From contig JAAOMT010000502.1 in the NCBI GenBank assembly GCA_016748015.1, positions 186,001-250,000 of the forward strand: a DNA stretch of 64,000 nucleotides, given 5' to 3'. Below are positions 1-44,449 of the stretch, in pieces. The position numbers were made by a program, and so were the translations under genes. Below the pieces are notes generated by a model. It saw only the letters and a program-made list of their open reading frames with translations, was not told the origin of the DNA and did not search any database. Source of the DNA: Geosiphon pyriformis uo1. Lineage: Eukaryota; Fungi; Glomeromycota. Each line of letters begins with the position of its first letter. Within the stretch, counting starts at the first letter, position 1.

Positions 1-299
1 AAAATAAATTTATTTACATATTCTTATAAGAATCATTAAATAGTTTATGTAATATTAAAAAAACTTGTAAGAGTTATTTGTTTTTGTTTATCTTATATTT
101 TTTTATAAAGTATACATTTAATATAAGCAAACTTAATAATTGCATTATAAAATTTTTTGCTATTAAGCTCTATAAACTGTTTAAGATTTGTAATAACAGT
201 TAGTGTATTTTTAATACTTATTATTTTTTGTACTTTTGTTTTTTATTAAAGCTATCATGTTTTATTTTACAATTTATTATAATATAATTTACAATCTTA

Positions 300-1560
300 T
301 TATTATCCAAATAATTCAAAATAATTGTATTGTATTTTCCAAATAGATTTACCAACTCTTTAATTAATAAGTATATACAATTTAGTTATATGCAATTAAA
401 TTTTTTGTAATCCTTAATTTTTTCTGATATTATTTCTTAATTATAATTAGCTATTATTTCTAAGTTTGTAGTTTATTCTAAAAGTTGTTATTTGTATTAA
501 TTAAAAAAATGCCAAATTTGTGTCAGCAATAAACAATTATTTTATTTAAAACATTTTTTCTTGTTTTATAAATTAGACACATTATTTAAAGTTAGTTAAT
601 TATATAATATTATCAATATTATTATTAAAAAAATTTAATACATGGTAAAAAAAATGATAATAATAATATGCTTTAAAACAATAAATAATTCTAATATCTA
701 TAGACTGAATATGTACTGTTAAGTTAGATGTAAACTATTCTATATAAATATTTGTAATAAATCTTATATTATAATTGTATTAGTAAAATTGTCTATTAAT
801 AATAATATATTTTGGTTTTTTTATGTAGCTGATAATCCTAATTAACAAATTATTATTGAAAAATATTACTAATCATTTAAACACAAGTGTTTGAATAATA
901 CTGAAAACCAAGTTGTTTTTCTGTTTTCTTTTAAAAACAGCATAAATATTTAGCATAACTAATAATAAGTGGTGGCAAATACTTAATTTTATTAGTATTA
1001 GTTGGAAAAACAAATGTTAATTACATTTTTGATTGTTTGATACTATAATATAATATTGTAGTAAAATCTTAATTTAGTAATATAACATAAAATAATATAG
1101 TTTTATCTATATTAAAAATAGTATATAACTTTTAATTAGCAAAAAATGTTATTATATACATTTATTTATCTTCAATATACTTAATATTGACTAATAATAC
1201 TCATTATAAAAATAAAGTAAATACAATTTAATATGGTTTTTAAAGCTTTCAAACCAGTTATTAAATAGTTTTTGGCACTTATTTTTTGGAATATTCAATT
1301 AATTATAGAACTTTATATCAATAGCTAAAATTACATCTTTAATAAATATTATTTTATGTAATTTTGCCTCTTAAACAAAAATAACAAATTCTTTATCAAA
1401 GTTTAGATTACATATTATATATATATGCTTGCTAGTCAAGTCATGTATTGTATTTATTTATGGATAAAAATTTGGTTTATTTTTGATTTAAGCCAAAACT
1501 AAAAACTGTTTTATGTATAAAAAACCATTTTTTTTAAAGTGTCTTATAGTTTTTGATTGG
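300..1560 (-). mobile_element. Degenerate pogo/Tigger (CENP-B-like HTH + DDE_1) transposase relic
   Basis: Minus-strand translation gives 'LFNNWFESFKN' (HTH_Tnp_Tc5 'SNGWLESFK'), 'IFNIDKTILFY' (~1090-1120; 'xFNMDETGLFY'), 'YLPPLIISYAK' ('KLPPLIIGKS') and 'HIQSIDIRIIYCFKAYY' (~665-715; 'HLQPxDAGIIRxFKAHY'). Many stops; deviations are mostly C->T/G->A. Confidence 0.75.
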
Positions 1561-1735
1561 TTTTTATTATTTGTATGATATTAATTAAGCATTATAAGCT
1601 TATTATAAAATATAGTATTTTTATAACTTTGTAAAATACAAGCTAAAAAAATAATATGTTTTTTACTATTAGACATAGTAAAATTAAAAAACAAAAAAAA
1701 AACTTTAATCACATAAAACTAATCCAAAAATTCGA

Positions 1736-2105
1736 TTTGATTACTTACACAATTAATAATAATTTAAAACTTAAAACAATTTAAAACTTTAATTTGATTA
1801 CTTATATAATTAATAATAATTTAGAGCTTAAAATAATTTAAAACTTTGACTTGATTGCTTATATAATTGATAATAATTTAGAACTTGAAACAATTTAAAA
1901 CTCCAACTTAATTATTCATACAATTAATAATAATTTAGAACTTAGAACAATTTAAAACTCTAATTTGATTACTTATATAATTAATGATAATTTAAAACTT
2001 GAGACAATTTAAAATTCTGACTTAATTACTTATATAATTGATAATAATTTAAAACTTAAAACAATTTAAAACTCTGACTTGATTATTTATATAATTAATA
2101 ATTAT
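1736..2105. repeat. 57-bp tandem repeat, 6 full copies plus one partial
   Basis: Units start at 1736, 1793, 1850, 1907, 1964, 2021 and 2078 (exact 57-bp period, no indels). The most GC-rich reconstruction is CTTGATTGCTCACACAATTGATGATAATTTAGAGCTTGGGACAATTTAAAACTCCGA. Confidence 0.95.
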
Positions 2106-2399
2106 TTTGTTGAATAAATAATATTATATTATTATATTGTATTTTTAATTATGAAAATATTGATTTGCTTTACTATAATTTTATAAAAATTAGCAGTATT
2201 TAAACTAAATCTAATACTTGAAATAATCCATATTAATAGTAAAAAGTTATGAATTATTAAGTATTACAGATATAAATTATAAACATGAGAATTTTTTAAC
2301 TACTAAATTGATAAATTCAAAATGCTATAATTTATTACAAGTTATGAGTTATTTTAATATGAATTATCTTAAGTTTGACTGTATATTAATTTGTGAAAT

Positions 2400-3450
2400 T
2401 AATAATTTGGTTTTAAAATAATAATATTTTAATTAATCTTTATATGCAATTTTTGCTAAAATTTTGTTATCAAGTTTTAACTTGTATAATCTATTGTTTA
2501 GAACTTTATAAATATAAATAGTCTTTTTTATTAATGATTAAATTTTCCACTTTATTATTTTTAGTCTTAGTTCTGTTTAAGAAAACTTTATTTTTAATTT
2601 TGAATTTATTAGTTTATTATCATGTTGTTTTTTTTGTTGAGCTTGAAAGTATTCAATATAAGTGGCTACAATTTGTTTTTTTTAATGTGTTAAAAAGAGT
2701 GTAAACTCTTTATTAAAGTGTTTTTTGGAAGTTTTTTTTGTAATTGGTTATACTGAGTATATTTTTATAGTAAAATTAATCAATAATATTGTTATTTCTT
2801 TATAAATCAAATTAAATAATATGTACTTTATTGTGTCTTGTTTTAGTATTTTATATACTAATAACATTAATAAAATAAAGATATTTTATTCTTATTTAAA
2901 GTTAGTTGAGATTTTGGCTAATAATTCATATAATGTTTAATTAAGTTATTTTACATGTCTATTTTTTTATAAATAATATAGTAATAATAAAAATTATTTA
3001 ATGTTAAATTGTTTACAAATTTTTTGTATCAAGTTATTTACAAAATATGTTTTTTGGTTGGATAAAAGTTTGATTAAACATTTATGTCTATAAATAATGT
3101 TTTTATAGATAAAAATTGTTATTAATTTGTATTTACTTGTTAAATAGTTTTGGCTTCAAGCTATTTGGTAAGATAATCTATTACAATTAAAATATAAAAA
3201 TTTTCTTAGATTGTGATAGGTAATGATTTAACTAAATTAATTCTAATTCTGTCAAAAAATTGTTCAATTTTAATTGGATTTAAAAGTTTAATAAAATAAG
3301 TTCTTTTTTTTAACAACTATTACAAGATTTTTATATATTGTTAAATATTTTTTTGCATATATGGCCAAAAATAATGTTCAAGTATTTTTTGAATAGTATT
3401 ATTTTTCTTTAAATATATTGATAAGAAATCTGTATATATGTTGTATAAAA
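2400..3450 (-). mobile_element. Degenerate Ty3/gypsy integrase region
   Basis: 'ILEHYFWPYMQKNI*QYIK..CNSC' (H2C2 zinc-binding), 'FDRIRINLVKSLPIT...IVIDYLTK*LEAK' (rve core 'GIDLVGPLP...DYLTKWPEA') and a C-terminal 'IYKVLNNRLYKLKLDNKIL'. Confidence 0.85.
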
Positions 3451-4325
3451 TTGTTTTTTTTTGGTTTATTGTATTAATCTGAGTAAATTGTTTAGGTTTA
3501 GCAATTTCAATAGTAAATTTTGTTGTAATATAAAAAATATTGTTTTATTTGGTATTGTAATTAGTGTTTTTTGGTTAGAAACTAATTTTTTGGCATGGTA
3601 AAAATTTTCAAATAGTTTTTAATATTGTTTTAGTTTTTAAAATCTATTGTTTATTAATTGTTGTTTGTTGAGTTAATAAATTTATTAGTGTTGTTTTTAA
3701 TTTTGCCTTATTTTTGAAAAGCTATTTATATTAATATTATTATCCAAATAGAAAAATCAATTCGAAAAATATTGGAAAAAATATGATTAAAAACATAATA
3801 ACTTAGAAAAATATAATAATACAAAATAATACAGAATAATGTATTATAACTTAAGATAATATAAGATAACACACAATAACACAAAATTATTAATTATAAT
3901 ATAAGATAACCAGTTATAATAAAAAAAATAAAGCAATAACAAAAATAGTAAGCAATAATTAGTAATAACAAATAATTGAAAGCAATTTTGTAAAACTAAA
4001 AATATGTATAAAAACAAGTAGTTTTAGCAAAAAAGAAAAAAACAGACAAAAAAACAGATAGATAGAAAAATATATTCTTTTATTCATATTTGTTAGATCT
4101 ATTTTATTTATATATTTATATTACTTTAAATAAAAAAAATATTCAAAACTCATACTTACTTCTATATAATTCACAAATTTTGTGTTTAATCTGAATTAAT
4201 TATTTTTTTACTTTTATTTCTGGCCAGATGTTTTTAGCATAAAACTGTCTTAAACAATAACAACTTGAATCAATTGCTCCTAATTATAACAATTAACAAA
4301 ACTAATTTTTTTTTATTTTTCTATT

Positions 4326-4327
<2 letters not shown>

Positions 4328-4360
<33 letters not shown>

Positions 4361-4725
4361 TGGAGTAATAATATTATAAAATTAACTGTCTAAGAATAAA
4401 CTTTGTAATAGCCTAGTAAAAAAGGAAAGCTTTTTTTAAGATTAGATATTAACATTATCTTATTAATTTATTAGGAAAACAAAAAGACACTGTTAGACTC
4501 TAGTGACTGTATTTAACTAGCTTAAAGAAGATAACTTATATACTTAAGTTACAAGCAGCCAAATATTTTTTTGTGCTTTATAATCAAAAAACTTTATAGA
4601 TAAAACTAACAAAAAAAACCTTTAAAGATTGATATCAATAACTTATCTCAAGTATCCAAAATAGAAATCTCAAACTTCTCTTATTCAAATTTAGAGCACC
4701 AAATATTATCACAATATTTTACTAA
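4328..4725 (-). mobile_element. Probable 5'-truncated LINE 3' end with poly(A) tail, between the gypsy RNase H and integrase
   Basis: T32 run at 4328-4359 (poly(A) on the minus strand). The adjacent ~360 bp starts abruptly after the gypsy RNase H and reads 'CDNIWCSKFE', similar to the 'IWxxR' motif at LINE ORF2 C-termini. Confidence 0.5.
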
Positions 4726-7700
4726 GTTTATCCATAACAATGTGTAATTTTTCTGGTTTGTAGTAAACAATATATTTGTAGTTAACTAAAAAGTTAATCT
4801 ATTAAGATTGTTTGATATTAAATTCTGCATTCTTTTTGCTAAGTTATTTGAGGTTAATATTGTCAGTAATAATGTCAAATTTTTTTTTATAGGTACTGTT
4901 GAAAATATTTGAGAGCCCAAATAACAGCTGCTGTTTTTAATTCAATAAAGCCATATTTGAGTTCTGTAAATTTGAGTGTTTTGCTAGCATATACAATAAT
5001 TTGTTTATTGCTATTATTATTTAATTGTGATAAGATAACACCAAATACTATATATAAAGCATTAATAACTAATTGAAACTGTTTGTTAAAGCTAAGATAA
5101 ACAAAAATTAAAGCTGTTGTTAATTTTTCTTTTGAAGTATTAAAGGCTTTTTATTGAGTTAATATCTATTAGTATTTTATGTTTTTGTTAATTAGGTAAT
5201 TGAAAAATTTGGTGATTATGAAAAAATTTTTAATAAACTTTTTATAATACAAGACTAATTTAGTGAATTCTCTTAATTCAATAGTGTTTTAAAAAACTTT
5301 GAAGTTTTATATAGTACTGATTTTTCTTAGATCTGGCTTAATTCTATTTTTGTTAATAATATAGTCAAGAAAAACCAAACTTGTTTTTCTTAAATAATAT
5401 TTTACAATATTTAATTTTAATTTTGCTTTTTGTAATTTTTGAAATACTTCTTATAAGTAGACCAAATAAGCTTTAAAAATTGAAAAGTAAACATTAGTAT
5501 TGTTGAGATAAATAATTATTAATTGTTATAAAAATTTTTTATAAACAATATTTATGAATTATTAAAATGTTGTTGGTATATTATAGAGTTTAAAAATATT
5601 ATAATAAATTTGTAGTTCTTTTTTTAGGTGGTAAATACTATTTTTAAATAATTTTTGAGATCTATTTTACTTGTTAGTATCTGTTTTCCAAGTCTAAAAT
5701 TAAGAAAAATTTGGTTTTTTATAAAGTATTTAATATATTGTCAATTTTTGAAAAAAAAACATTTTTAATTGTTATATTGTTAAGTTGATAATAATTTACA
5801 CAAAATCAAAATTTTCTGTTTTTTTTTATTAAAACTATTAGTAAAGCCCAAAAGCTTCTTAAAAATTAAATAAAACTACTATTAAGCATTTATTGAATCT
5901 TTTTTTTGATAAATTGATAACTAACAAATAGAATTTAATATGTTTATTGACATTTTAGTAGAATATCTTTTATGTAGATTTGGTATTGAATAATATTTGT
6001 TTTTTCTAGATTATTGTTGTTTTTAGTAAATATATTAGTGTATTTAGTAATAAGTTGTTTCAATTGTCTTTGTTGTTAAGGTTCTAAAGAATTTATATTA
6101 ATTCAGACAAATTTTTTTTCAATAATATAATAGTTTTCAGTACTTAAAGTAATGTTTAGATTTGAAAAAAGTGTGTATTTTACAATTTCAATAAAATTTA
6201 AAACAATTTAAAAGATTTCTTTCTAAAAAAATATTGTTATATATAATTTTAATTTTCAATCTATTTAATAAAACAATAAAGTAATTGTCAAGATTATAAA
6301 ATATTACTTAAAACTTTTTTATTTTGATTCTTTTGCTGGTTAAGAATAATTAAAAAACAATTTGAACTATTGCTTTTAGTAGAATTTTAAGTGCAATTTT
6401 GAAGTTAATTAAAAAACCATGTATTTTTTTCAAAATATTATAAATTATATTCTGTATTGATTTTATAAGCTTTTTTTGGTTTAATTCTTTAGTTATTATT
6501 ATCAGAATACTTAAATTATATAATAGATTGGTTTTTAAGTAAATAAATTAAAGTAGTTAATAATCTTATTTTTGGTTTTTATTTTCTAAATTTGATTTTA
6601 TATTTATTATTTTTGCTGGGTAAAAAAATGCTAAAAATATAGTATTCTAAATATTATTTATTATTATAAAGTATGATATATTTTTTGCACAATTGAATAT
6701 TTATTGATTCTAATTATTAAATTTAGATTTTTTGGATCAGATAATTGTAACTGGTAATTTAATAATATATTTTTTTTTATCTTTATAGTTAAATCTGACT
6801 AATTTTATTATGTATTTAATATATTTAGCTTTTTTCATTTAGTAAACATTTTTCTGGATGGCTTTATTAATTAAAGCTATAATAAAATTATAGATTATTT
6901 TGGCATTATATAAATAATAATAAAGTTTGTTAAAAACACTATTATATACTATATTAAAAAGAGTTTTTTTTTTACTTTTTTTAAAATTAACAAAAAATAT
7001 TAACAAGTTTAATTACAAACTTTTCTTTTCATTGTAACATCAATCTAGTTGTATTTTTTAAGTAATAGTTTTTTACATATAAAGCAAAAAATTTGGTCTT
7101 ATTTTCTATTTTTTTAACTAGAATTTAATATTAGAATATATCCATAACTAAAACTTTAATTAAAATAATGATTTTATTAATTGTGAAAAGAAAATTTTCA
7201 ATTTTTTTTAAAGTTTTTTTTAAAGTTTTTTTCATATTATTGGCGGTAATAATTACTGTTTGGGCTAATCAGTTAACATTTTATTAAAGTTGCTGTATTA
7301 ATTAATAAATAATAATGCTTCTAATAGATTTGTTATCTAAGATTAATCAAATTGGTTTTTCTTTAACTTTTGTTTTAGTATACATAGTAGTAATTGCTTT
7401 TTATTCTATAATAGCTGTATTGTTAAGCAAAAATAGTAATTTATTCACTTTGAATTTGAATAAAAAAATATTTAAAAGATTGGCATTTTTGGTAATCTTA
7501 GTTAGTAAAATAGTGTAATTATTGTTAAAAAAGATTTGTTTTATTGCTGTAACTTTAACTTTAAAAAGTACAGTTTGTTAAAAATCTAATTTTTTAGATA
7601 ACTAAGTTAAGTATAATAGTATATAGGTCTTTACTACAAATTACTTTGAGAAACCAATAGATTGTTGTAATTAAATCTGTTGTTATTTATTAAAAATTAG

Positions 7701-9700
7701 TTTTGAAGTAAAATTGGTTTTGTTAAATCAATTTTTTAACAAATATTTAATATTGTTAAACAAGTAGTAGTTATTAATACTGTTGTAAAATTGGTTGTAA
7801 AGCAAATTAATAATAATTATTCTAATATTAAGATTTTGGAAAATAATATACTAATAGTAAGTATTAATAATATTATTAATTATTTTTTGCTTGTTGGTTT
7901 TGTTATATTTCTCAACAATTTTGTTTTTAGTGTTCTGAAATTTTACAGTAATAACAGTTTTGAGATTAATTATTAAATAATAATAAATAGTTGTTTTGAT
8001 TGTACTATTAATATAGCTTGTATTTTTGTTGCTGTTATAATTGTTAATTAGTAAAATAGTTTTTGACTTTTTTAGTCAATTAGTCAATTTTTTTTTCAGC
8101 TGCTAAGCTGGTTTTTTTAATAATTATATTGACAAGTTTAATACAGTTGGTCTTTTCTATGGTTATTTTATAGACTTTAGCATATTAAATAACAATTATT
8201 AAATATTTTAAAGCATGTGAACAAACTTTTTTAATTAATTTGTCTTTTAATTTAGTAATAAATTGGTTTAAAATTTGAGTATTAGAATAGTAATTGTTGG
8301 TCTTTAACTAACAAATTTGTTAGAAAAGTTTATTAAACTTCTTAAGATAGGTCATAACAGATTTAAAGAGTTTTTGTTTAATGTTTTAAAATTAATTTCG
8401 AAAAGTAATAAAAATGTTGTTGTTTGTAAACTGTTTTAAGAAAGCATTTTTAAATGTTTGTTAATTTTTAAATAGTTTATTTAAGTTTTTAAACTATTTT
8501 TCTGCTGTTTCTTAGAAAAAGTAAGAAATTGCTTCTAATATTTTTGCTATATTCTATTTATTAGTATCATCTGCTTTTAAGACTTTATTAAGCTATTTTT
8601 GAAGACTGGTGTTAATATTTTCTTCTATAAATTTAGTGATTTTTATAATATAAATAATTGTCATTTTTTTTGTACATTCATTTTTAGCAGTTTTTTCTCA
8701 GTGAATTCAGAAATGTTTTTATTGGTACTTGTATTGTTAAAGTAATTATTCTGGTTTTTTGCTAAAAAATTGAGAAGATTTATGCTAGTAAAAATTTGTT
8801 CTGGCTGTTGGATTAAACTTTTTGGTAATGTAAAATTTTCTAGTTTCAAAAAACGATTAAATGATAAATTCAATGTCTGAGCTTGAGCAAATAAAACTGA
8901 AAATGGTGTAATAGAAAGTGGTAATTTGATACTGGTTTCTTATTCTGGTGTTTATAAGTGTTTAATAGCTATTCTTGATATATTGTAAGTGATGTAGTTA
9001 ATTTAAGATGGTTTTTTCTTTTGTTTTTTTTTCCAGCTTCTGGTTCTAATTCTAAATTAAAAGAGAATTTAGATTGTACTAAGTATTTTTTTTCACAATA
9101 TTAAAAAATGTTGTAGTCAAGTTCTTGAAAATATGTGTAAAAGATTTCGTTGTTGCAATTTTCAGTGCTTATACAAGATAGTATAATAAGTTTTTATAAA
9201 GATTACTTTTGATTTCTGAAACATTGTAGTTTCCAAAAAAATAATTGTTAATATGATTTTTAATGTATTAATAAAGTGTTTTCTTAAATATTTCAATTCT
9301 ATTTTGAATATTAAATTTTTGTTTACAATAAGTATAAATTGATTAATAATACTTTAAAGTTATTGTGTTTGCTAGAATTTCTACTTTAAAGTTGTTGCTG
9401 TATTAATTCGTGAAAAAGCACCAAATATTACTGATAATTTTTGGTCTTTTTTTGAATGTTATGAATATTGTTTTTGTTGTTAATTTATAATTACTAAAAG
9501 CAGTTAAATCTTTGATAACTGAATTTATTTTCAAATTATAGAAAATAATTTAAACTACTGGGCTTATTACTACTCTTCCGAATTTTTTATTATTTTTTGG
9601 TTTTTCAATTCATATTATTAATATTTTATGTTATGTTTTATTTTATTGAATAAGATATTAATTTTATTATCTGATTTTGTTTTTATTATGGTGCTAATTA
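4725..9700 (-). mobile_element. Degenerate Ty3/gypsy LTR retrotransposon internal region: gag - protease - dUTPase - RT - RNase H
   Basis: Gag ~8150-8630 ('TFKNAFLKQFTNNN...KSVMTYLKKFNKL...ILNQFITKLKDKL'). Protease ~7050-7400 ('LILDNKSIRSII' for LILDSGSAGSII). dUTPase ~6310-6480. RT ~5340-5870 ('FWALLIVLIKK..FCVNYYQLN', 'LDLENRY*Q', YLNN at 5499-5510 for YLDD). RNase H ~4725-5150 ('VINALY..FGVILSQ..IVYASKTL..ELKTAAVIWALKYF..ITDN'). Integrase lies further downstream on the same strand, giving gypsy order. Confidence 0.9.
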
Positions 9701-10099
9701 AATAATAAAAAGTATTATATTGTTAAAGATTGGTTTCAAAAATAGTGTTTTAATTAATTAAATATTTTAATTATGTTTTCTTATGAACTCTTTTATAATT
9801 TTTTTATTTTTACTTTTAAAATAAGCTTTTAAATATCACACTTTTTTGATGACTTTTTAAAAAAATTCTAGTTATTCTTTGGTTAAATAGTTTATTTTTT
9901 GGTCTCAATTTATTTTTTGTGTTTTAAATATCAATTTAATTTAATTTTTTATAAAACTTCTATTAAGACTGGTTTTTGTTTAAAAATAAATAGTAATAAT
10001 AATTTGTTTAATATTTTTTTTGTTTTTCTAAATACTAAAATAATCTATACAATTATATATATACTATAGTTAGTAATAATATATATAATTATATATATT

Positions 10100-11700
10100 G
10101 CTAAAAAAAAGTATTGTTATTACTAAAAAGATTCCCAAAATTGTGTCTTTTTTTTAATAATAACAGTTACAATTTTTAAATTTTTAAAGTTATTTAAGTT
10201 TTTTTATTATGTCTAAAATTAGAATACTTTTAATAACTTAAAATTAAATTTAACAAATACTATTTTATCTATTTTTATTATAAAAGATAAAACTTTTTTA
10301 GCCATCTTTTTTTTAAATCTAAATAAAAATTATTTTTTAATAAAGCCATTTTTAATTCAAAAAAACTTATTATAGTCATATATACAAATATTAAAGTTAA
10401 TAAACTTATTATCAAGTTAATTTTAGATAATAATTTAATAAACAGTATTATTAAACAGTTTATAAATTAATTAGGTATTAAATTGAATAAGCTGTTAATA
10501 TAAACCTTAATAGAGCCATAAAAATTTTAATTAATAAAATTAATATTTTTTTTGAAATTAATAATAATATTATATTTATTAAAAGAAATTATACAATATT
10601 AAATACTTATTAGTAATAATTGGTTGTTCAAAATAAATTTTATAATCGATTAAAATACTTAAAAATTTTAGTTAGAATACAATAAATAATACATACAAGT
10701 ATTAACAATCTGTACTTATTTTAAAACAACTATTATCAAAATATTTTTTATAAAATTTAAAAAAAAATTTATGTTTAAAATTTATTAAGTTTTGTGAACT
10801 AATAATTTTAGAACTGGTTTATTTTTATTATTAATTTAAAAAAAAAGACAAAAAAAACTACAAATAAGTTTTTTAATATACTTATTACTATATTAAAAAA
10901 ATTAATTAATCAATATATATTAATACAAAATATTAAAAAATTTAAAGTATTAATATTTAAAGCTAAAATATTTTAATTGTAAAAAAAATTGTTATCTATA
11001 AAAACATATTATAATAATAATAAAAAATAACAAATATTACTGTTAATTATATATACTTAACAATTTAGCCAGCCAAAAAAACAAAACAAATAAGACAATA
11101 AATCATGTTTTATTTATAATACTACTTTATTTAACAAAAAAATATGGAATAACATTTTTTTAAAAAAAAATATATTATAAATTATATTAATACACAATAT
11201 TTATTAATAATTAAATCAGAAAAAAACTGTTTTTATAGTTGTTTATAATTAAATTCTTTATATTTAAACAGTTATTTATAATAAATATAAAATTAAAAAA
11301 ATAACAATCATAAAAATCAATAGTATTATTTTAAAAAAAATTTATAATTAAACACATATTTATTTATAATTTTACTAAAAATTTATCTTTTATATTACTT
11401 AATAATTTAGTTAAGTTTAATATATATTATTAATTTTTAGTATTAATTAAAAAAACAAAAGCAATATTTATAAAATTTAAACACCAAACTTTATAATTAT
11501 TATTATTTTTTTTTAAATTTAATAAGTATAATTTAACTATTACTTAGAATTTTAAAACAAACTAAGTGTTTTAAACTAACTGTAATTTACATATTTTTAT
11601 ATATAACTAGTTATTTGAACCAGTTCAGACTATATTATATTGCTACAATAAAAATAAATTTATTCAAAGCTGATATTTTTTATACTATATCAAATATATT
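10100..11700 (+). mobile_element. Second degenerate Ty3/gypsy fragment (protease region), opposite orientation
   Basis: ~10360-10450 reads 'KKLIIVIYTNIKVNKLIIKLILDNNLINSII', homologous to the protease at ~7320-7400. It is followed by 'LISNNWLFKINF', similar to the 'LxGxDWL' protease C-terminal motif. Confidence 0.7.
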
Positions 11701-11729
11701 AATATTATCTATGCAGCACTTTTTTTTCA

Positions 11730-13640
11730 GTTAAATCACTTTTTTCTCTAACTTAATAATAACTTTGCTAAAAAAACTTATATAAACTATAAATTCATTA
11801 ATTTTAAAGTTAAAAACACTGTTTAAAATCAAATCATTATTGATAAACTGTTTAAATGTTGTAATCAAAAAGCTAACAGACTTAACAATTAATCCAACCA
11901 ATACAGAAGATTTAGTCAGATCAAATTTTAAAAAAGACAACCAAAACAACACTAAAAAGTTATTAACAACAACAAAAAAAAAGATAATAGTTGTTAGAAA
12001 TAGAAAAAAGCTCAAAGAAACAGAAATTTTAACATAAAACTTAGCACTTACAAAATATAATGTAAATATTTTAGAAGTTTTAAGAGAAAAAAGTGGAGAC
12101 ATTTTACAAATTACAGCCAAAATAATTTACTTCTTAAAACAGCACTAACAGTTAAGAGTTTCCTACCAGATACAATACTTTTTTAATATATCAGTTTTGC
12201 TTACAGCAGTATTCAAATCCACTTGAAATCCAAATGTAATTAAAATAAACTGGAAATAAAGACCAGAATTAGAAGAGCAAAAAATAAAATACAATTAATT
12301 ACCAACTTGAAATATTATATTACTAATTTTAAAAGCCATTTAGCCAAAAAAAAAGTTGATCAACTTGGTCTTAAGCTTATTATAAGATATAATAATTTTA
12401 TTTTGATTTATCAAGAGAAAGATCCTAATACTATTTTTATCCATTAAAACCAACCAATAATTTAAAACAAACACAACAAAATTTAATTTATCAAAGTGAA
12501 TTATTATGTATTATTAAACACCAGCAGATTTTAATACAACACAGACAATTTCACTAAACACACCAAAAGCTGTTTTAATATTAGCAATAAATATACTCAA
12601 AAGCATATTATGTAGTATAATAGTATCAAAAAAAGAACCAGTCTTAAAAACCACCAAAAATTTGGCAATTTTGAGAGTAGTCAAGCAAACAGTATTTGTA
12701 AGCTCTATTAAAAAAGCAGTTTTTAAAGACTTTTGAAAAGCAAGCTCCATACAAAAAAGCTTTATATTGTCTTTTAATACCAATTCAACACCCAAAAAAC
12801 CATATACAAACTGAAAAACAGTCTTAATATAAGCCAATTTGATCTTAAAAATAGTATCAAGTACCAAAGTAAAAACCACTTACTTAGCAAATTTTTAATA
12901 ACTAAAAATAGTTTTCCAAGCATTATTAATGATAGTACTAAAAATTAGCAAAAGAAATAATTTAGTTTCTATTTGGTTAGCCCAGTTTTTAAGAATAAAT
13001 AATTCTATAAAAAATAATTGTTTTGCTTTTAAAACTAATAATAATTTGCTAAAAACCATCATATTTGACAACATAGTCAATAGTTAATCTTGGCCTATCT
13101 TGAATTGCATGCTAAATAATACAACAGAGATCTTATCTAAAATTTTATTAGAAATCACAAAAAAGTTTAATATAATAATAGTAAAAACAAATAACTGTTT
13201 CCACTTTTTTGAATTTTTGGTCTTTTTGACTATATTTTTGAAAAACTGATGCTAATAGCACCAAGTATAGAAATTATAGAAGAAAAAACTAGCTTGTTGA
13301 TTGATCTGTTATTAAAAATTTTTGGGTTTTTAAATAGAATGGAGACAACATTAAAATTAATTCAAGTATGTCTTTTTAAAAAAACTTTGACTGGTAAAAA
13401 ACCAGTCAAAAATAAGAAAAATGCTTTAATAGCTACTAAAGACAACTTTTCACGATTATTAGGTAAGAAAAAGGCTTCTAAAACGTTTTGTCTAGTTGCT
13501 TCTACAACAGAAAGAGGTTTTTTGGTTAAAATTTTGTTAAATATCTTAAAAAAAATATTAAATACAGCTTTTTTGCTTTTTGTTCTGGTTGTAGTCATAA
13601 AATTAAGAAGACAAAAAGTTTTTTGTTTATATAATTATTG
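11730..13640 (-). mobile_element. Degenerate LINE ORF1 (RRM-like region plus CCHC knuckle remnant)
   Basis: ORFs 13362-13598, 12895-13080, 12514-12879 and 11731-12120 are co-directional pieces of one broken ORF starting 'MTTTRTKSKK'. There is a Cys remnant 'C*CCFK...LAVIC' at ~12105-12155. The LINE ORF1 assignment rests on recalled similarity. Confidence 0.6.
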
Positions 13641-13649
13641 TTTTATTTT

Positions 13650-14420
13650 ATGTTAAATTAAATATTATAATAAGTATAATTTTATTTATAATTTATTACT
13701 ATGTATTTTTTATTTAATTTTTAAGATTAACAAATTAATTAATAAAAACAAATAAGAATTAAAATTAATACTTAATTCTAATTTAAATATTGTTTTTAAA
13801 TTTAACAAAAATTTAAATACTATTTTTGATATTAAATAATATATTATATTTTAATCTATTAAAAAACAAAAACTTAAGTAACTTAATAAAAATAACAAAA
13901 ATTTTATTTTTAATTAAAATAGTTAATTAATTTTAAAAAAAAAATTAGAAATAATAGTAAAAGAAATAAAAAAAAATCTATTTTTGTATAAATTATAATA
14001 TTATTATAATAATAATTACTTATTTCTATATATTCAAAAATTGTTTAATTTTTTTAACAGAAAAAAATAATTTTTAATATTAGATTTAAATAATAATTAT
14101 GATAAATAGTTATAAGTTTAAATAATAATAAAAAAACAATAATTATTATTTAAAAAAAAATTTTGAATTTAATATAATACTATTTAACTTGATTGATATT
14201 TTTTTATTATTATTTTACAAATATAGTACAACTACTATTTAATATATAGAAACAAACTAAATAATTTTAATTAGATATAACTTATGTATTTTTTACATAT
14301 AATTAGTTACTCAGATTAATTAAAGCAATACTATATACTTACCTAAATCTTTGTACTATTATTCAAATCTGAAAAAAACAAACAAATTTTATATAATTCA
14401 AAACTAACAATAAAAAACTC
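13650..14420 (+). mobile_element. Heavily deleted continuation of the plus-strand gypsy pol (RT fragments)
   Basis: 'FLILDLNNNY' (~14071-14100; LDLxSGY), 'FEFNIILFNLID' (~14162-14197; FEFNVMPFGLTN) and 'KLEIIVKEIK' (~13942-13971), similar to the start of dUTPase motif 5. Confidence 0.55.
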
Positions 14421-14449
14421 TACAATACTTAGCAAATAAATCACTTTTA

Positions 14450-17400
14450 TTAACAAAATTCTAAGTAAAATTTATATATTACTAATCAGTTTATTTTTTT
14501 TATATTTATTCTGAATTTTAACTTAAACAACTATAACTTACTTGAATATTTTTTAGCTAAATAATAAATAAAATCAACTATTACTAATACAAACTTTTTT
14601 TATTACCAAAACTAATACTGTCTTATTAATTCAGTTTTTAAAAACAAAACTCTTATATAAAACTATATAAATATTTATATTAAAATTCTCTAAAAAAAGT
14701 ATATAATATTAATAATAACAATACAACATAAATTTTTACTAAAAACTTTTACAACTTAATATGTTTATACAAAATTTTTAATATACAGAGACATTTTTTA
14801 AACAAGTAAAAGATTAAATAATTTAATATTACTATATATTAAACATAATATACTTAAATAATCTTTGTTGTAAAGTTTTTTCCTAATTGTAATTGGCAAC
14901 TTTTTATAAACTGCTTTTATTAAATATATATAAAAAGCAGCTGATGTCTAATTAATAAAACCAAAAAGCATGTAAGAATTTAGATGTTAAATTAAAGCAA
15001 TACAAGCTTAATCTATATCTTAAATAAATAAGTTATCTAAAATTTTTGTATTAAGACCTATTTTCTATTAAGCATAACAAATAGTTTAATAAATATTACA
15101 AACAAAATAATGAGTATTATTATATACTATTAAATTATTAACTATAACAAATTTTTTTCAAACTCTAATAGAAAGAGCCAAATAAGACTGTATTGTATAA
15201 TATGTTAAAGTATTAGCTAAATTATTACTTATATTTTTTAAATAAATTTTAATCTTTATTTACTTCACTAAAATATTTTTTGATCTTATTAAATTAGCTA
15301 TATGCTGTCTTTTTACTTAATACTTGTTTCAAAAATCAGATAAACAAAACTTAAACTCTAAAATACATGTACTAATAGCAGCTTAGTTATCTGTATATAA
15401 AACTATCAAGTAAAAAAAAGAAACATATTTTAATATTAAGACAATTACTTATAATTTTAATATTGTTAAAGACAACAATTCATGTATCTTAGCTTTTACT
15501 CTCATTTTAACATTAAAAAATACACTGCTGCTACACCAGCCATCTTTGCAGTTTTTAATTTTTTTAATAAACTATTAATATAAATGTCAATTGTTTTAAT
15601 TTACAATTCATATAAATATTCTCAAATATTTAAAAATTTTTTTAAGCAGAAAAAATTTGAGCATTTAGATTCAAAAATAAGCTTACCAATTCTAATAGAA
15701 AAATTACTTATGTATATTAAAGTTTTTTTAAATTACAATAGCACTGAATTTTAAAAACTCAACTTTTTCTAATAACAAAACATCTTTTAATTTACAATCA
15801 TTTTATATTATCTAATAATCTGTTTTTAAAGACAATATAAGAACTTTTTAAAAAACAAACCACATCAAAATAATAAAAATTTCTCAGAATTACAAATATT
15901 AGAAAGTGTCTAAACTTATAAAATACACTAAACAAATTGTTTACCAAAAAAATTTTATTATTCAAAAAGATTTTTACAATGTCCACCAAAAAATTATTAA
16001 TTAAGTTAACTCTTAACTTAATTAGATGCTACAATAAATTTATAAACATTTAATTTAGAACTTGTAAATTTAAAAAACAATGCTCAAATAACTAGTCAAA
16101 AACTTCTATTGTATTAAAAAAATCAGATTATTAAAGCCACTTTTATTTTTATTTGTATCTGCTCAAAAAATTTTAATTTATACAGAAAAAATAATACAAA
16201 GTCTTATTAAGAAAGTTTTTGGCAAATTGGCCTTAGATTTAAGCACTTTTTTTATTATAATATTCTATTTTTGACACATATTTTTAAAAATAAAACTAAA
16301 CTATAGCCAGTAATTTATTATAGGCTGTAAAATTATTAAAATCAAATAAGAGAATTGTTTATTTAATAATCTTTTTCTAAGAACCAAATTTGAAAAAAAT
16401 CTGATATCTGAATAAGTTTTGACAAAACTTGGCTTAAACATGCTATTTGTAAACAAATAAATTTCCAAATATTTATGAAATTTATCATGTTTAACAATAA
16501 AAATTGGCTAATTGCTGATATACAAGAAAGTATTAACAATTCTCTAGTTAATAAAAATTTTATTGATTTTAAAAAACTTACTAACAATATCAAAAATATA
16601 TTACATTAAAGCTTAATTATTCTTCATTCAAATTGTATTATTGATAAAAGTACCAACTACAAAAAAAATAATCTTTTTTTACTGATTTCTACCTTATTCA
16701 TTTTTGTTACAAATTTTATATTAATTTTATATTTACAAAAACGCTTATTCCTCTTTATTTTGCACAATAACTGATCATAAAAAATCTTTTAAAGAAGTGA
16801 TAAGAAAACTTTATTTTGATTTAACCCATCAAGCATATTATAACTATTTAAAAAACCAAAATTAGTTATCATATTATTAATCTTGCTTATGTAAATATTA
16901 CCAAAAAATTTAATAAACTTGTAATATATTTTAATATATCTTAAATTAATTTTTAAATAATGCCATTTAACTAAATTATAAGTTTATACATGTTTTACAA
17001 AATTAATTAAAACTCTTAATTCTTTTTTTAAAATATTTTTTACAACTAAACTAATAACAACCACAGAAAATTAAGTTAAATACTTTTTAAAATTAAGAAA
17101 TAGTTATTTTAAAAAACACTAAGCTTACTATATATAGACAAAATATAATTCAACAAAATTTTAAACAAAATTTTCTTAGCTGTTTTAATTAATACAATAA
17201 CTTAAGTATTTGTAAAAATACTATCTTAATTATAAAAATTAAAAATTATTGAAACTCATTCTTCTTTTCAAAGATCTAAAATATTATTAATAGTCAAACA
17301 AAAGTTTAATAAATTTAAAAAACAATTTATTACTACATTATTACAATGTTTTTATAATTTATTGAAAATATTAAATAGGCTAACTGTTTTATTATTAGGT

Positions 17401-18660
17401 AGATTACTAATTATTAAAGCCAATATGTCTATGCTAATATTATTTATTACACCAAAAAAACATTATTTTATATAACTCAATAATACATATTAACAAAACC
17501 ATAAATTAAACAAAAATAAAAGTATTTTATGTTTTTTTATCTATTTTATTATAATTTTATCAACTTTAAGCTTCACTTTTTTTGGCTCTAAAATCAAGTT
17601 TTTTTTTATTATCAAATAATTCAAAACTATTTTACAAAAAACTATTCCAAAATACTTTATATTATGTTTTTTTATTAAAATTAAAATTTTCTATTTGCTT
17701 TTCAATTTTTTTTCTAATAAATATATCTTTGGCCACCTTTAACTCATAGTATTTAGACTTATAATAGTCTTTTTTGATTTTTGACATATATTTAACTATT
17801 TTAATAGACTTCATATTTTTGAGAATTATAAAATTAACTTTAAAAGTTTCAATATTATCTGTAATCAATTAAATTTTGACAAAACTATTAAATTTAAACA
17901 TATTATTTAAACTTAATCTTTTTATTGTCTTAGCAATTAACAATTTTAGCTTAAAAAACTTCAAAGACTGTTTGTTTTTTAAAAATCAAATTTACTAAAC
18001 CAATATCTTGAAAAAATTTCATTAGCTAAATTCAATATTACTTCTTTTAATACTTTTTATATTGTATCTAAATCTTTAAAATTTTTAGCAATATTAAACT
18101 CATTTTGTATCATTGACAATTTATTAGATAAACATTCTCCAAAATATGTCTATTTAGTTTTATTTATATTTTTTGTTTTGAACTTTTAGTAATTTCTATT
18201 AGTTTGCTTGTGAATACAATTCAGATAAGCATTTAATAATCTTTTTAAGCCAACTAAAATTATAACTGCCTTGTAATCTGTTTTAAAAAACTTAGTTACT
18301 AAATTAATATTATGACTTATAATTGCTAATATCAAATATTAACTTAAAATAGAAGTTTTAACCAAAAAGTGGCCACAAAATAAATTAACCAACCCCAAAT
18401 CCAAATATTTTCTGAGACTTATGCTTTTTTTGGATTTATCTTCATTAAAATTACCTTTCAAAATTACAAAAGATCCAGAATTGGTTGTCTTATCAATAAA
18501 AGTTGACCTTAGAAGCTTGATCAAGCTTAGCATCAGCAAATGCTCTAATATACAAACCCAGAACCATGATCAAGAATTTATTCTTAAATAAAAGACAAAC
18601 TAAAATAATTTTACAAAGAATCTCATCAATTTTTGAGACATTTTAAAAACAATAAGGGAC
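14450..18660 (-). mobile_element. Degenerate LINE ORF2: APE endonuclease - RT - RNase H - C-terminal Cys motif
   Basis: 'VLGLY...FVILKGNFNE' (~18440-18565; APE GDFN), 'GTFINNTI*' (~16628-16654; GAFVDDTIW), 'LIVLYTDN*AAI' (~15373-15408; RNase H YTDS) and 'VYKKLPITIRKKLYNKDYLSILC...FTC' (~14800-14912). Confidence 0.85.
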
Positions 18661-20189
18661 TTAATTCTATAATTAGGACAATAAATATCAAAAAATTCTT
18701 ATAATTCAAAATGCTTCTTTTATGAAAGCGAAACCTAATTAGAATTTTCGAATCAGAAATAAGTCAAATAATTAGTTTAAAAAAATTATGAGCGAGAAAC
18801 AAGTTAAAATTCGAATATATTATAGTTTATAAAGAAAAATATTTTTTATATAAATTACAAAAAGAACGCAAAAAAAAAATCACTTAAAAATTTTTATTAA
18901 ATTAAAAATAAAAATTTCAAAGAATGATATAACATAATTCTGCTTGAGTTTAGAATGGTAATAAAAAAACTTGAACTTATAATAAAATTAAAATGTAAAA
19001 AAATCTTTAAAATAAAAATTATCATGATGTTTTTGAAAATTAAACAATATTAAAATCTTTAACCAGTTTTTTTTTACATCGATCACTTTAAAAACAGCTT
19101 TAACAAACTATCACAGAAAATTTTGATATTCGTATAAAAATTTTCTCTTCAAGATTTTATCATCTAAATACATTCAAAGTATTAAAATTAAACCAATCAT
19201 TGGATAAAATAGTGCTTTAAATGGTTTGATTGGGTTGGCCTCAAATCTGACTTACAAATTTTGAATCAATTAAAAAATTGTGATCATTCATTTAATTTTA
19301 AGTCAAAAATTGAAGAAAATTTGCAATATGCAAAATTATATTATAAAAAGTTTATTTAAAACACTAAAAATAAATATTTTAGTAAGAATATATAAAAAAT
19401 CTAAAAACTAATTTTAAAAAAGTACTTAAAGGTAACAAATAATTTATTTTTTATCATATTGACTTTAGAAAATAATATTCTTGGTTTGTTTGTAAATTAA
19501 AACAATTAATTCTGCATAATAAATAAGATTTTTAAAAAATTTCAAAGAAATGTTAATATTATAAATTATTTATCTACCAATAATATTGTAAATTTAAAAA
19601 TTTGCTAAAAGCTTAATTAATAAGTTACTGAATTGAATTGAATTGAATTATTATTTAATAATATAAATAACTAAAACCTAAATTTAAACACAAATTATAA
19701 ATTATGAATAAAAAAATATTATTTGAAAAACTACAGAATTTTGTTACTTATTATAAAAGCAATTTTTTTTTATTGCATATCAAAAGTATACTATTTAATA
19801 AATCAATCAAAAACAGTCCTGATTATTAAAAAATAAATGTAATTTAAACAAATTTTAAAGTTATAATTGGTTACATTTTTTTATAGAATACTTTACTATT
19901 TTAATTGATCATTTAAGTTTTCATAATATATTTAAATAAACCTAGTTTTGCAAACATTAAATTAATGTTACAAATTTGCTTCTTTTATAAATAGTAAATA
20001 GTATTTTTGATCATTTTTTTAAAGTTTGGTAAACCACTTTTTTAACTAGAACAATATATTAGATGAATGATTGCTGTGTCATCATCCTTCGTAATATTTG
20101 TTTAAATAATATTCGCAAAGCAAATGGATTGCTAGGCGCAGATAAATCCTCCCATTTTGGTGGTATTCTTTATTCTTCGAATTTACAAT

Positions 20190-21225
20190 ATGCATTTTTG
20201 CTTTGATTATTAGCACTTTTTCGATTATTGTTTCATTTATCACTTGAGCCTCTATTATGAGAAATAAAATATAACAGAACCATTCCTATACAAGCAATTG
20301 CTGCGAGATTTGAAAGTAATTCACCAAAAGAGAAATTTGAACGGAAACCACGATATTGTCATCATTATCAATAATGGGAGAAATCTTGAAACCTTCTTTG
20401 GACATTCCCTTATTTTGCGGGAAAGAAGCCCATATTTTATGTTCATATTGTAGGGATATTCCTCTTCTGAGGTAAAACCTTTCCAGGTTGAGATAAAAGA
20501 TATCGAGCATCAGTGTTTGAGGAACTTTCAAAATAAAAGATTCTATTTCTTTCGTAATAATTTCTTGACTTCATTATGAACAGGTCACTATTTTCAAAAG
20601 CTTCTTTGTAGATATCTTTACCCTGGTAAAATTTCTCTCTCCTGCCAAATACCTGATTTGAAATTAATTAAGGCAGCTCATAAATTAGGGGTCTAGCAGG
20701 TGGTTTTGTATTTATAAGACCAAAGTATCAAAAATCACAAAGAATGGTTGCATAAAAATATAAATTAGGTCTATCAATACAGTATTTCCAACATTGAATG
20801 TGAAAGACTTGCTGTCTATTGTCAGTATCAATTACTCCAAAGGCTCCTTGAGGTATTTCAAGATTCAAAATTCACCCCTATTCCTGATAAGCTATTGCTT
20901 TCCTTATTGGAAATTGATGATCTGAAAATGGAAGAAATCGAAATTTGGGAAAAGGTATTGGCATGGAGTTTAGCTGAGCATTAATGGTCTGATAGAGATG
21001 TCGAAAAATGAACAGCTGGCAAGAACGCTTCAGCCGTTCATTCCATATATCCGATTCTTTGGCATATCTCAAGAAGATTATTATCGAAAAGTCAGGCCTT
21101 TAAAGTTTTGCTTGCCAGTACAGCTGAAAGAAAATTTAAAGAAGAAACATTATTTGCTCGAAGTCCCTGTCAATAGCACAATCTTGCCTTCTAGGACAAA
21201 GTGCAAGTGCAAAAATTCAGTTTAG
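20190..21225 (+). pseudogene. BTB-BACK pseudogene, paralog of the gene at 34134-35238
   Basis: Colinear with the intact paralog: 'ETFFGHSLILRERSPYF', 'YLYPGKI', 'DKLLLSLLEIDDLKMEEIEIWEKVLAWSL', 'TLQPFIPYIRFFGISQEDYY..VRPLKFCLP'. Stops at 20451, 20694, 20715, 20982 and 21009, frameshifts, and the intron donor reads AT instead of GT at 20533. Confidence 0.88.
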
Positions 21226-21856
21226 AAAATGGATTTTTAAGATTCAAGACAATCTAAAAAATACCCCTGAGTGGAAAACCCTTTTTTTAGTTTGCAACTA
21301 CAAACCTCAACATTACTATGAGATTGAAACGTTAAATTTCAAAACGGCTAAGATGAGGAACTGACGTGATTTTCAAGTAATGGCCTACAAGACCCCGAAG
21401 AACATGAAAGATGCAAAATTTTAATTTAGAAAATTTTGTATTAAAACTGATTTGCTATCTTTTAAACTTCAGAGAAAGATCTTCCATTTTGAGCTTGTCC
21501 TTTAAATCAACAAAAAAATAAATTCAAAATATAAGAGAATTCTTAAGAAATTGTTTTACAAATTTGTATCTTGATTATTTTGATAAAGTTATTTTATAAA
21601 ATAGTTTGAAATAAACTTTACTTATTATATTATAAAAAATATAATAATTTTTGGTTATATTATTAACAGTTTAAATAAATTTTAAATATTTTAAGAAAAA
21701 TATAATTAAAAATTTAAATTGCGGTGTAGTTTGGAATTTTTTATAGTAAAAATACATATGAAATTTTTATAATTGTTTTTTTTAATTATATATGTTTTAA
21801 TACTTAAAATAAATTTGCAAGAAAACATATTAAGTAAAAGTAATAATTCCCAAAAC

Positions 21857-44195: not shown

Positions 44196-44449
44196 TTTCT
44201 GTAAAATTTATACTTTTTAATAATTTTGAATATATTAGATTTATTATAACTAAAACTATATATAGAAATATAATGAAAAGTTTTTCATAAATAGACTTAA
44301 ACATGCTTGATAAGAATATTATCTAGAATCTTTAGAAATTTTTTTTCTAATAAGCCAAATTTGTAATTACAGTTTACTTGAACTTTTCATTTTGCTTCTT
44401 TCTAAATTTGTTTAATGAAATTACATTTACAATAAAACTTGAAATACAA

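Follow-up and report, generated by a model that had tools for sequence, protein, structure and literature searches.

RIP-like C-to-T hypermutation of transposon islands in Geosiphon pyriformis that may follow chromosome domains

Introduction

RID-dependent RIP of Neurospora and other Ascomycota erases all classes of transposons by almost pure C:G>T:A change, hitting copies independently and leaving AT-rich blocks beside GC-normal genes. In Neurospora it stops near an identity of 80–85%. A heterochromatin-related C>T pathway of Neurospora, a form of RIP dependent on DIM-2, DIM-5 and HP1, was reportedly described by Gladyshev and Kleckner in 2017; it is still triggered by repeats and acts in the premeiotic cell. 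The sequence context of RIP is CpA or CpT (Amselem 2015, PMC4352252). Beyond the Ascomycota, transposons of Pucciniomycotina show TpCpG hypermutation (Horns 2012, PMC3318451) in genomes that carry only a DNMT1-class enzyme (Amselem 2015, PMC4352252). The transposons of Rhizophagus irregularis are 5mCpG-methylated (Dallaire 2021, PMC8647823), and a passage of the same paper, citing Venice 2020, states that RIP was not detected in Gigaspora or Mucoromycotina. RIP-type hypermutation is seen as confined to Dikarya; arbuscular-mycorrhizal relatives are reported to be without it.

Here we analyse a stretch of 64,000 nucleotides (the window) from Geosiphon pyriformis, contig JAAOMT010000502.1. A preliminary description, made from the letters alone, had taken the source for a probable glomeromycete, and the species indeed belongs to the Glomeromycotina; one ORF of the window matches a Geosiphon pyriformis protein at 100% identity. 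Its genome is AT-rich (28% GC), and no sexual stage is known for it.

Results

Base counts give 17.5% GC for positions 1–18,660 of the window, with a CpG o/e of 0.08 and exactly 12 CpGs, which the preliminary description had put by eye at about a dozen. In the remaining window, which is flanking genic DNA, CpG o/e is 0.78. The right end of the low-GC island lies beyond 18,660, at about 20,000, and a genomic copy (L045) shows that the island extends leftward past the window start. Short-read unitigs from a public run match positions 15,555–21,499 with no differences and with coverage equal to that of the flanks, so the island is not an assembly artefact. This run is probably of the source sample, and public read contigs containing the island stretch come only from that probable source sample, with no variants and no RNA data set listed among them. 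Over 312 kb, the (TpC+GpA)/(ApC+GpT) index drops from 1.25 to 0.53 with declining GC.

The transposon relics of the window are collected in Table 1, and the converted motifs that had been reported earlier are in place. For both family B and the possible LINE relic the profile search gave no Pfam match and identity is motif-based. Family B is probably the gag region of a retroelement, as a CCHC-knuckle relic legible in one genomic copy (L030) suggests; a gap-free search found neither inverted nor long terminal repeats around it. The pogo copy of the window has 50–51% of its ancestral C and G converted and differs from a GC-rich genomic copy (L017) by 170 C>T and 157 G>A changes, 18 T>C and 15 A>G changes, plus 17 transversions. 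In its 57-bp tandem array, transitions account for 19 of the 19 variable columns. The intact Tc1/mariner element has genomic copies at 98%, 85–91% and 67–73% identity.

Table 1. Features of the window (positions are those of the 64,000-nucleotide stretch)
Feature	Position	Strand	Remarks
AT-rich hypermutated transposon island	1–20000		13–21% GC, CpG o/e about 0.08
pogo DNA transposon, hypermutated copy, family A	1–2436	-	DDE_1 and HTH_Tnp_Tc5 in GC-rich copies
57-bp tandem array within pogo element	1737–2107		6.5 units, without indels
Ty3/gypsy pol relic	3344–5856	-	domain matches and converted motifs
Integrase_H2C2 in gypsy relic	3344–3544	-	weak match
RT_RNaseH_2 in gypsy relic	4890–5150	-	frame still open, E=1e-18
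YLDD>YLNN in gypsy relic	5499–5510	-	motif
SPWASP>SFWALL in gypsy relic	5839–5856	-	motif
Family B	11688–13985	-	10 other genomic copies, 72–77% identity, Ts/Tv 16
Possible LINE endonuclease relic	18342–18588	-	motif only
GDFN>GNFN in possible LINE relic	18444–18455	-	motif
Intact Tc1/mariner transposase ORF, contrast in GC-normal DNA	23852–24685	-	DDE_3 and HTH_Tnp_Tc3_2
Second AT-rich, CpG-poor island	38000–46000		CpG o/e 0.11–0.46
Tc1/mariner DDE_3 relic in second island, SPD>SPN	42878–43222	-	

The genomic DNA sampled comprises 61 loci, and the pogo comparison rests on 29 genomic copies, picked by similarity searches that scored the best candidates only, with mutations called against per-column reference states. 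These copies fall into two classes, 21 at 14–20% GC and 8 at 29–35%, with none in between. The AT-rich class has lost 46–49% of its C and G via C>T or G>A, and the GC-rich class only 6–20%. Per site, C>T stands at 0.459 and G>A at 0.490 in the AT-rich copies; T>C (0.005) and A>G (0.002) are not raised, and transversions lie at 0.005–0.010. Across each family as a whole Ts/Tv reaches 22.7 in pogo and 16 in family B, a near-exclusive C:G>T:A change as in RIP, which confirms the transition-only hypermutation of repeats first read from this window.

The two pogo classes are of the same age by transversions. The per-copy transversion load is 0.0058 against 0.0064 per site (p = 0.28), the pairwise transversion distance is 0.0107 among GC-rich copies, 0.0120 among AT-rich copies and 0.0114 between the classes, and transversion alleles held in common interleave the two. 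Hits are independent among copies, with the per-site mutated fraction spread evenly from 0 to 1 and a pairwise phi of 0.22 ± 0.04, and mutated copies are 80–85% identical to one another. The flanks of AT-rich copies are mostly CpG-free at 7–19% GC and those of GC-rich copies mostly normal, with the exception of three GC-rich copies (L033, L037 and L032) that are bordered, at one end or both, by AT-rich, CpG-poor DNA. A younger, pogo-derived family of at least 16 copies with 93–95% identity is unmutated, as are Tc1 copies at 98% identity; this younger family has about 4% non-CpG C>T, a 5' bias of nearly nil and a Ts/Tv of 2.9. The GC-rich transposon copies are also CpG-depleted (o/e 0.3–0.6). 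The transversion distance in family B is 2.7 times that in pogo, yet its apparent loss is similar; a single clock would serve both only if much of the divergence in family B predates insertion. A BACK-domain gene, tried as a paralogue control, was without close DNA paralogues.

A pair of segmental duplicates (L039 and L041) provides a control within one segment. Their AT-rich part differs by 271 transitions and 16 transversions in 2247 bp and the contiguous GC-normal part by 5 transitions and 3 transversions in 432 bp, an 11-fold difference in transitions at equal transversion density. Mutation thus continued after the segmental duplication, and by simple arithmetic with small transversion counts the post-duplication transitions fit a constant-rate exponential loss. 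In the pogo element of these duplicates, the final 300 bp are mutated at only 0.08 and 0.17, compared with 0.47 in the body, although this spared end belongs to a repeat with more than 28 homologues. The island edge therefore falls within the repeat and not at its end. Together with the same-age copies, this control bears out the earlier suggestion of a cytosine mutator that acts on repeats or heterochromatin beyond 5mCpG decay.

The context of the changes is set mainly by the 5' base. With CpG excluded, the mutated fraction is 0.66 after T, 0.54 after C, 0.35 after G and 0.33 after A, a preference of TpC > CpC > ApC ~ GpC that amounts to a bias of about 2.5-fold in rate and leaves RpC sites 33–35% mutated. 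Pyrimidines further upstream also help, TTCA being hottest, and this 5' bias is present at low dose in copies that are lightly mutated. The 3' bases rank G > C > A > T, which is not the 3' preference of RIP (CpA, CpT/CpG), and TCA (0.71) is mutated no less often than TCG (0.64). CpG contexts make up 4–12% of the C/G cells and 6–16% of the C>T changes, leaving 84–94% of changes at non-CpG sites, so that the concentration at CpG expected from 5mCpG decay is not seen. The preliminary description had named in advance two outcomes that would count against it, a repeat spectrum like that of the rest of the genome and changes almost all at CpG; we find a spectrum unlike the rest of the genome and changes that are not nearly all at CpG.

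No strand-coherent runs were found: covariance between neighbours is about 0, whether on the same or on opposite strands, although near-saturation blurs tracts, and local strand asymmetry falls short of the permutation mean, unlike the strand-coordinated tracts of RIP. C>T about equals G>A in every pogo copy, so the plus-strand-only G>A of APOBEC3-type editing is absent. Adjacent CC>TT doublets in AT-rich copies are not in excess (235 against 240 expected, and 320 against 318 expected), and a test for declining mutation at the edges along the element was negative, with a flat profile.

A PF00145 profile search of the genome found a gene of DNMT1 type at C371:420027-423692 that carries an RFD domain. 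The spliced methyltransferase model was queried exon-wise. A stand-alone C5-methyltransferase was also found; by similarity its nearest relative is in Ambispora, followed by phage and bacterial enzymes, and a close counterpart exists in Ambispora only. Among the PF00145 places read, no RID-type gene was identified, and the stand-alone enzyme groups with phage and bacterial enzymes by similarity rather than phylogeny. The OTT_1508_deam and NAD1 profiles had no genome match, a weak negative as control searches were also silent. The UDG family gave a single weak exon-level match, and Tet_JBP matches were all below the cut-off, with none near the methyltransferase places found.

Discussion

We lean towards a steady deamination of cytosines that is confined to a chromosome domain, with a RIP-like outcome that is not delimited by repeat homology, because same-age copies are spared, part of a duplicate is spared and the boundary falls within a repeat. 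On this view the island is a group of dead transposons kept in a stable chromosomal state, here named ON, in which cytosines of both strands and in all contexts would turn to thymine about 10 times faster than in same-age copies beyond such blocks, a rate about 100 times that of transversions per site. Conversion would be steady rather than episodic and would work site by site, without strand runs and with a 5' pyrimidine favoured, its limit being the domain and not the reach of homology. The ON state may correspond to silent chromatin and the chemistry to deamination of cytosine or 5-methylcytosine, either via dense methylation that includes non-CpG sites or via an enzyme recruited to silent chromatin. 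Rising AT-richness may in turn reinforce the ON state, which would account for the two classes of copies. The three GC-rich copies with an AT-rich flank are not predicted by a purely positional model. CpG methylation as the main driver fits poorly since CpG is hardly hotter than TpC within ON copies; a 5'-pyrimidine preference is not known for DNMT1-type enzymes, which also counts against this reading.

True RIP would require that duplicates be recognised by homology and mutated premeiotically, in a cryptic sexual cycle, by a RID/Masc1-like or DIM-2-like methyltransferase. The two footprints have much in common: C:G>T:A changes only (Ts/Tv 16–31) in elements of both class I and class II, copies hit independently, AT-rich blocks like RIP isochores beside GC-normal genes, certain island edges near transposon ends, C5-methyltransferase genes in the genome, and an identity among mutated pogo copies close to where RIP ceases in Neurospora. 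However, 8 of the 29 equal-age pogo copies escaped and are interleaved in the genealogy with the mutated ones, younger repeats at 93–95% and 98% identity are untouched, and homology does not limit the mutated tract, as seen in the spared contiguous part of the duplicates and the spared end of their repeat. Furthermore, strand-coherent runs are absent, the context is 5'-YpC rather than CpA, the rate looks steady, and in this lineage outside Dikarya the sole stand-alone methyltransferase found sides with phage and bacterial enzymes rather than RID. We therefore consider true RIP unlikely. Of the three options in the preliminary description, dense methylation with deamination and a deaminase both stand, whereas homology-triggered RIP with cryptic sex is the least favoured because copies and families escape, the GC-normal duplicate is spared, the edge lies inside a repeat, strand runs are lacking and the context is 5'-YpC. 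The heterochromatin-related pathway of Neurospora is similar in that mutation is linked with silent chromatin, as may be the case here, rather than strictly with the duplicated segment, and can reach non-trigger DNA; in Geosiphon, in contrast, accumulation looks continuous, as judged from sequence.

A DNA cytosine deaminase, APOBEC/AID-like or of a double-strand type descended from bacterial toxins, could act at silenced transposon chromatin without methylation as the chemical cause. Some deaminases prefer TC, and the order TpC > CpC >> RpC with its TTCA maximum is reminiscent of these; that CpG is no hotter than TpC also speaks for this explanation. Strand symmetry in a DNA transposon permits a double-strand DNA enzyme and rules out cDNA editing; APOBEC3-type editing was rejected on this ground, the best-sampled family being the cut-and-paste pogo. 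However, the bias of about 2.5-fold is far below that of known APOBECs, clustered strand-coordinated hits are lacking, and neither deaminase profile matched the genome, with the weakness given above, so that this explanation appears unlikely. Ordinary neutral decay, in which aged sequence moves towards the AT-biased equilibrium expected at 28% genomic GC and 5mCpG decay adds to the loss, would suit the AT-rich genome, the CpG depletion even of GC-rich transposon copies and the shared 5' bias of lightly mutated copies. This reading is contradicted by the finding that mutated copies are no older by transversions than spared ones and by the 11-fold transition gap within one duplicated segment; neither A>G nor T>C is elevated, most changes are non-CpG, and the ON signature differs from background decay because the younger unmutated family has a low Ts/Tv and scant 5' bias. 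We regard it as highly improbable. Just as improbable is sunlight as the cause, with UV lesions at dipyrimidines in heterochromatin that this soil-surface fungus would repair poorly: mutation of C after T or C, helped by upstream pyrimidines, is a dipyrimidine pattern, but CC>TT doublets are not in excess, the bias is only about 2.5-fold and RpC sites are still 33–35% mutated.

Like Pucciniomycotina, Geosiphon has a RIP-like footprint beyond Ascomycota in which a 5' T matters; there, however, the target is TCG and depends on CpG, whereas in Geosiphon TCA rivals TCG and most changes are non-CpG. Rhizophagus irregularis belongs to the same subphylum and Geosiphon also has a DNMT1-type gene, but CpG decay alone cannot yield the loss seen here. 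In the literature searched, which excluded the Geosiphon genome paper (Malar 2021), we found no published description of such hypermutation for Glomeromycotina. More tentatively than for domain-confined deamination itself, we propose that Archaeosporales (Geosiphon, perhaps Ambispora) possess an undescribed, self-reinforcing C-to-T defence coupled to chromatin domains, continuous and sexless, with a 5'-pyrimidine signature and enzymes unlike those of RID-based RIP. Candidates would be the stand-alone C5-methyltransferase, which is restricted to this lineage, or a deaminase of double-strand DNA that has escaped recognition.

If true, a C>T mutator in Glomeromycotina would alter current ideas on the distribution and origin of genome defences in fungi. 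Because the process follows domains rather than homology and seems continuous, it would be a natural example of mutagenesis coupled to chromatin that can be separated from sex, and the two-state behaviour of same-age copies would provide a direct experimental handle. Transposon age landscapes built on divergence, for this genome and related ones, would make ON copies look older by an order of magnitude than they are, and the mutator may thus account in part for the 'old LTR expansions' that have been reported in Geosiphonaceae and Ambisporaceae (PMC11952901).

A minor observation concerns the 57-bp array, which is more mutated in GC-rich pogo copies. Local targeting of this repeat was considered and rejected, as the excess is largely due to three CpGs per unit.

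Composition of the AT-rich islands

The G. pyriformis assembly (Glomeromycotina, order Archaeosporales) spans 128 Mb in 792 contigs, with the window at C404:186001-250000, and the product of a 571-aa open reading frame in the window (56775-58490, minus strand) is 100% identical to the NCBI Geosiphon pyriformis protein G9A89_001853. Positions 1-18660 hold 12 CpGs (o/e 0.08) at 17.5% GC, which bears out the CpG scarcity noted there by eye in the preliminary description; in the remainder of the window GC is 28% and CpG o/e 0.78. Binned at 2 kb, low GC and absence of CpG persist unbroken from 1 to about 20000 and return in a second island. Within 1-18660, TpC (o/e 0.74) and GpA (0.72) are depleted, both being about 1.0 beyond it, and GpC is over-represented. 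A public sequencing run, probably of the source sample, yields unitigs that match 15555-21499 with zero differences and are covered as deeply as the DNA on either side. The converted motifs that had been read from this region were also recovered: SFWALL (5839-5856) and YLNN (5499-5510) on the minus strand in a Ty3/gypsy pol relic, and GNFN at 18444-18455.

Features of the window and candidate enzyme genes of the assembly (G000; C, contig; L, extracted locus)
Feature	Coordinates	Strand	Remarks
Family A, pogo DNA transposon	1-2436		GC-rich copies with DDE_1 and HTH_Tnp_Tc5
RNase H part of Ty3/gypsy pol relic	4890-5150	-	Pfam match still E=1e-18
Family B, probable retroelement gag region	11688-13985		CCHC-knuckle relic in one copy; no Pfam match
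Tc1/mariner transposase, intact ORF	23852-24685	-	GC-normal DNA
Second island, AT-rich and CpG-poor	38000-46000		From composition
DNMT1-type gene	C371:420027-423692		PF00145; catalytic motifs plus an RFD domain
Stand-alone C5 cytosine methyltransferase KAG9301204.1	L061:1763-3090 = G000:C657:788262-789589		PF00145; intron-bearing
Uracil-DNA-glycosylase (UDG) superfamily, single weak match	G000:C621:250264-250581		25 bits; stop or intron inside

Pogo copies fall into two classes

Searching the window against its own genome returned two many-copy families, A and B. A second genome search, with the GC-rich pogo copy L017 as query, gained extra GC-rich copies and revealed family C, a younger, 1-kb pogo derivative. 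Among the 29 distinct pogo copies compared, 21 are AT-rich (GC 14-20%, CpG o/e 0-0.26) and 8 are GC-rich (GC 29-35%, CpG o/e 0.3-0.63), and none of the 29 lies between 20% and 29% GC.

We took the 8 GC-rich copies alone as the reference state, which is therefore independent of the scored copies. Across the 21 AT-rich copies the per-site frequencies were 0.459 for C>T and 0.490 for G>A, compared to 0.005 for T>C, 0.002 for A>G and 0.005-0.010 for transversions (Ts/Tv 22.7). The pogo copy in the window differs from L017 by 327 C>T or G>A changes, 33 reverse transitions and 17 transversions, and Ts/Tv in family B is 16. Loss of C and loss of G each amount to 40-59% in every AT-rich copy, with the strands equal, and only 6-16% of changes are at CpG contexts. 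By our arithmetic there are about 100 C>T changes per transversion in the AT-rich copies and about 11 in the GC-rich copies and family C. The RIP-like, transition-only hypermutation that had been proposed for 1-18660 is thus real, strong and confined to C:G>T:A; it is like repeat-induced point mutation in outcome, but differs from it in signature and in what delimits the mutated DNA.

All 19 variable columns of a 57-bp array at 1737-2107 are transitions. The 57-bp unit holds three CpGs. In L017 and two further pogo copies, L032 and L033, the array forms the first ~440 bp, and in otherwise lightly mutated copies it is mutated 2-6 times as heavily as the remainder, chiefly at the CpGs of the unit.

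With CpG excluded, the mutated fraction depends on the 5' base (T 0.66, C 0.54, G 0.35, A 0.33), so that TCA reaches 0.71 and ACT and GCT only 0.27-0.30. The preference for pyrimidines extends to positions -2 to -4, the hottest tetranucleotide being TTCA (0.80) and the coldest GGCT and AACT (0.19). Trinucleotide context accounts for about 44% of the between-site variance beyond sampling noise, and the context order in family B is that of pogo.

Domain edges and the timing of mutation

Hits are independent from copy to copy, with per-site mutated fractions evenly spread from 0 to 1 and a pairwise phi between copies of 0.22 +/- 0.04. Transversion alleles shared between copies are few, and their patterns interleave the two classes; the copies had therefore already separated when the mutational state was set.

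Two loci, L039 (C722) and L041 (C692), are segmental duplicates of at least 4.2 kb. Their alignment shows 271 transitions and 16 transversions over 2247 bp of AT-rich sequence, compared to 5 and 3 over the 432 bp of contiguous GC-normal pogo end and flank, a comparison shortened on the GC-normal side by runs of N (137-1134 bases; present in L002, L025, L029 and L041). Transition density is thus 11-fold higher in the AT-rich sequence, at the same transversion density. The final 300 bp of pogo in the two duplicates is mutated at 0.08 and 0.17, compared to 0.47 in the body. Together these results indicate that the process ran on after duplication and that a domain edge lies inside the repeat. By our arithmetic, based on small transversion counts, the post-duplication gain fits a constant-rate exponential loss of cytosine.

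Beyond the edge in L039, the GC-normal, CpG-rich flank of the hypermutated pogo (3873-5319, minus strand) contains open frames (58-210 aa) that carry a CxxC motif and match no Pfam family. It probably represents a further mobile element, in which case the spared side of the edge would be repeat-like and not a host gene.

Candidate enzymes

PF00145 matches seven places in the genome. The sole close relative of KAG9301204.1 among 1.8 billion representatives comes from Ambispora leptoticha (56% identity), followed by a phage-like multi-methylase and bacterial enzymes; it has the look of a horizontally gained gene confined to Archaeosporales. A second copy of this type lies 32 kb away, and there are more elsewhere, some with stops. 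Eight matches to the Tet_JBP dioxygenase, all below cut-off and in open frames of 126-176 aa (on C727, C692:1518538, C551, C657:288247, C506 and C332), could be relevant to cytosine modification; none was found near the methyltransferase places. None of these matches, nor the single weak UDG match, singles out the mutator.

Alternative explanations

We lean towards a steady deamination process coupled to a chromatin domain. Next to AT-rich copies the DNA is mostly 7-19% GC and lacks CpG, and next to GC-rich copies it is mostly normal; a purely positional model nevertheless leaves unexplained three GC-rich pogo copies that adjoin AT-rich DNA. Homology-triggered RIP, which we regard as unlikely, would produce a similar outcome, but homology does not delimit the hypermutation, since the spared pogo end has more than 28 genomic homologues. 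Along pogo, the density of mutations is flat. In Pucciniomycotina a RIP-like hypermutation of TCG has been described (PMC3318451), and CpA/CpT signatures go with RID/Masc1 in Ascomycota (PMC4352252). Transposons of Rhizophagus irregularis bear CpG methylation (PMC8647823), and the same paper reports that RIP signatures had not been detected in either Gigaspora or Mucoromycotina; a subphylum-wide transposon survey (PMC11952901) and two genome papers make no mention of RIP.

A deaminase recruited without methylation seems to us rather doubtful: the OTT_1508 and NAD1 deaminase families had no match in a genome search whose controls were silent too, and no strand-coordinated clustering of hits was found in its copies. 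Mutations at neighbouring cytosines are independent of each other (235 vs 240 expected; 320 vs 318 expected), and to UV damage we give very little credence. Ordinary decay is also highly improbable. In the non-hypermutated family C, C>T stands at about 4% outside CpG and 10% at CpG, with almost no 5' bias and a singleton Ts/Tv of 2.9, so the hypermutation signature differs from background. Nor is the hypermutation explained by copy age, as transversion-only distances (0.0107 for GC-rich pairs, 0.0120 for AT-rich pairs, 0.0114 between classes) and transversion loads per pogo copy (0.0058 vs 0.0064; Mann-Whitney p=0.28) are alike.

Other mobile elements in the window

The second island contains, at 42878-43222 on the minus strand, the remains of a Tc1/mariner element from another family, with an SPD>SPN conversion. 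Genomic copies of the intact Tc1/mariner ORF form three identity groups, of 98%, 85-91% and 67-73%, and those in the last group may be hypermutated.
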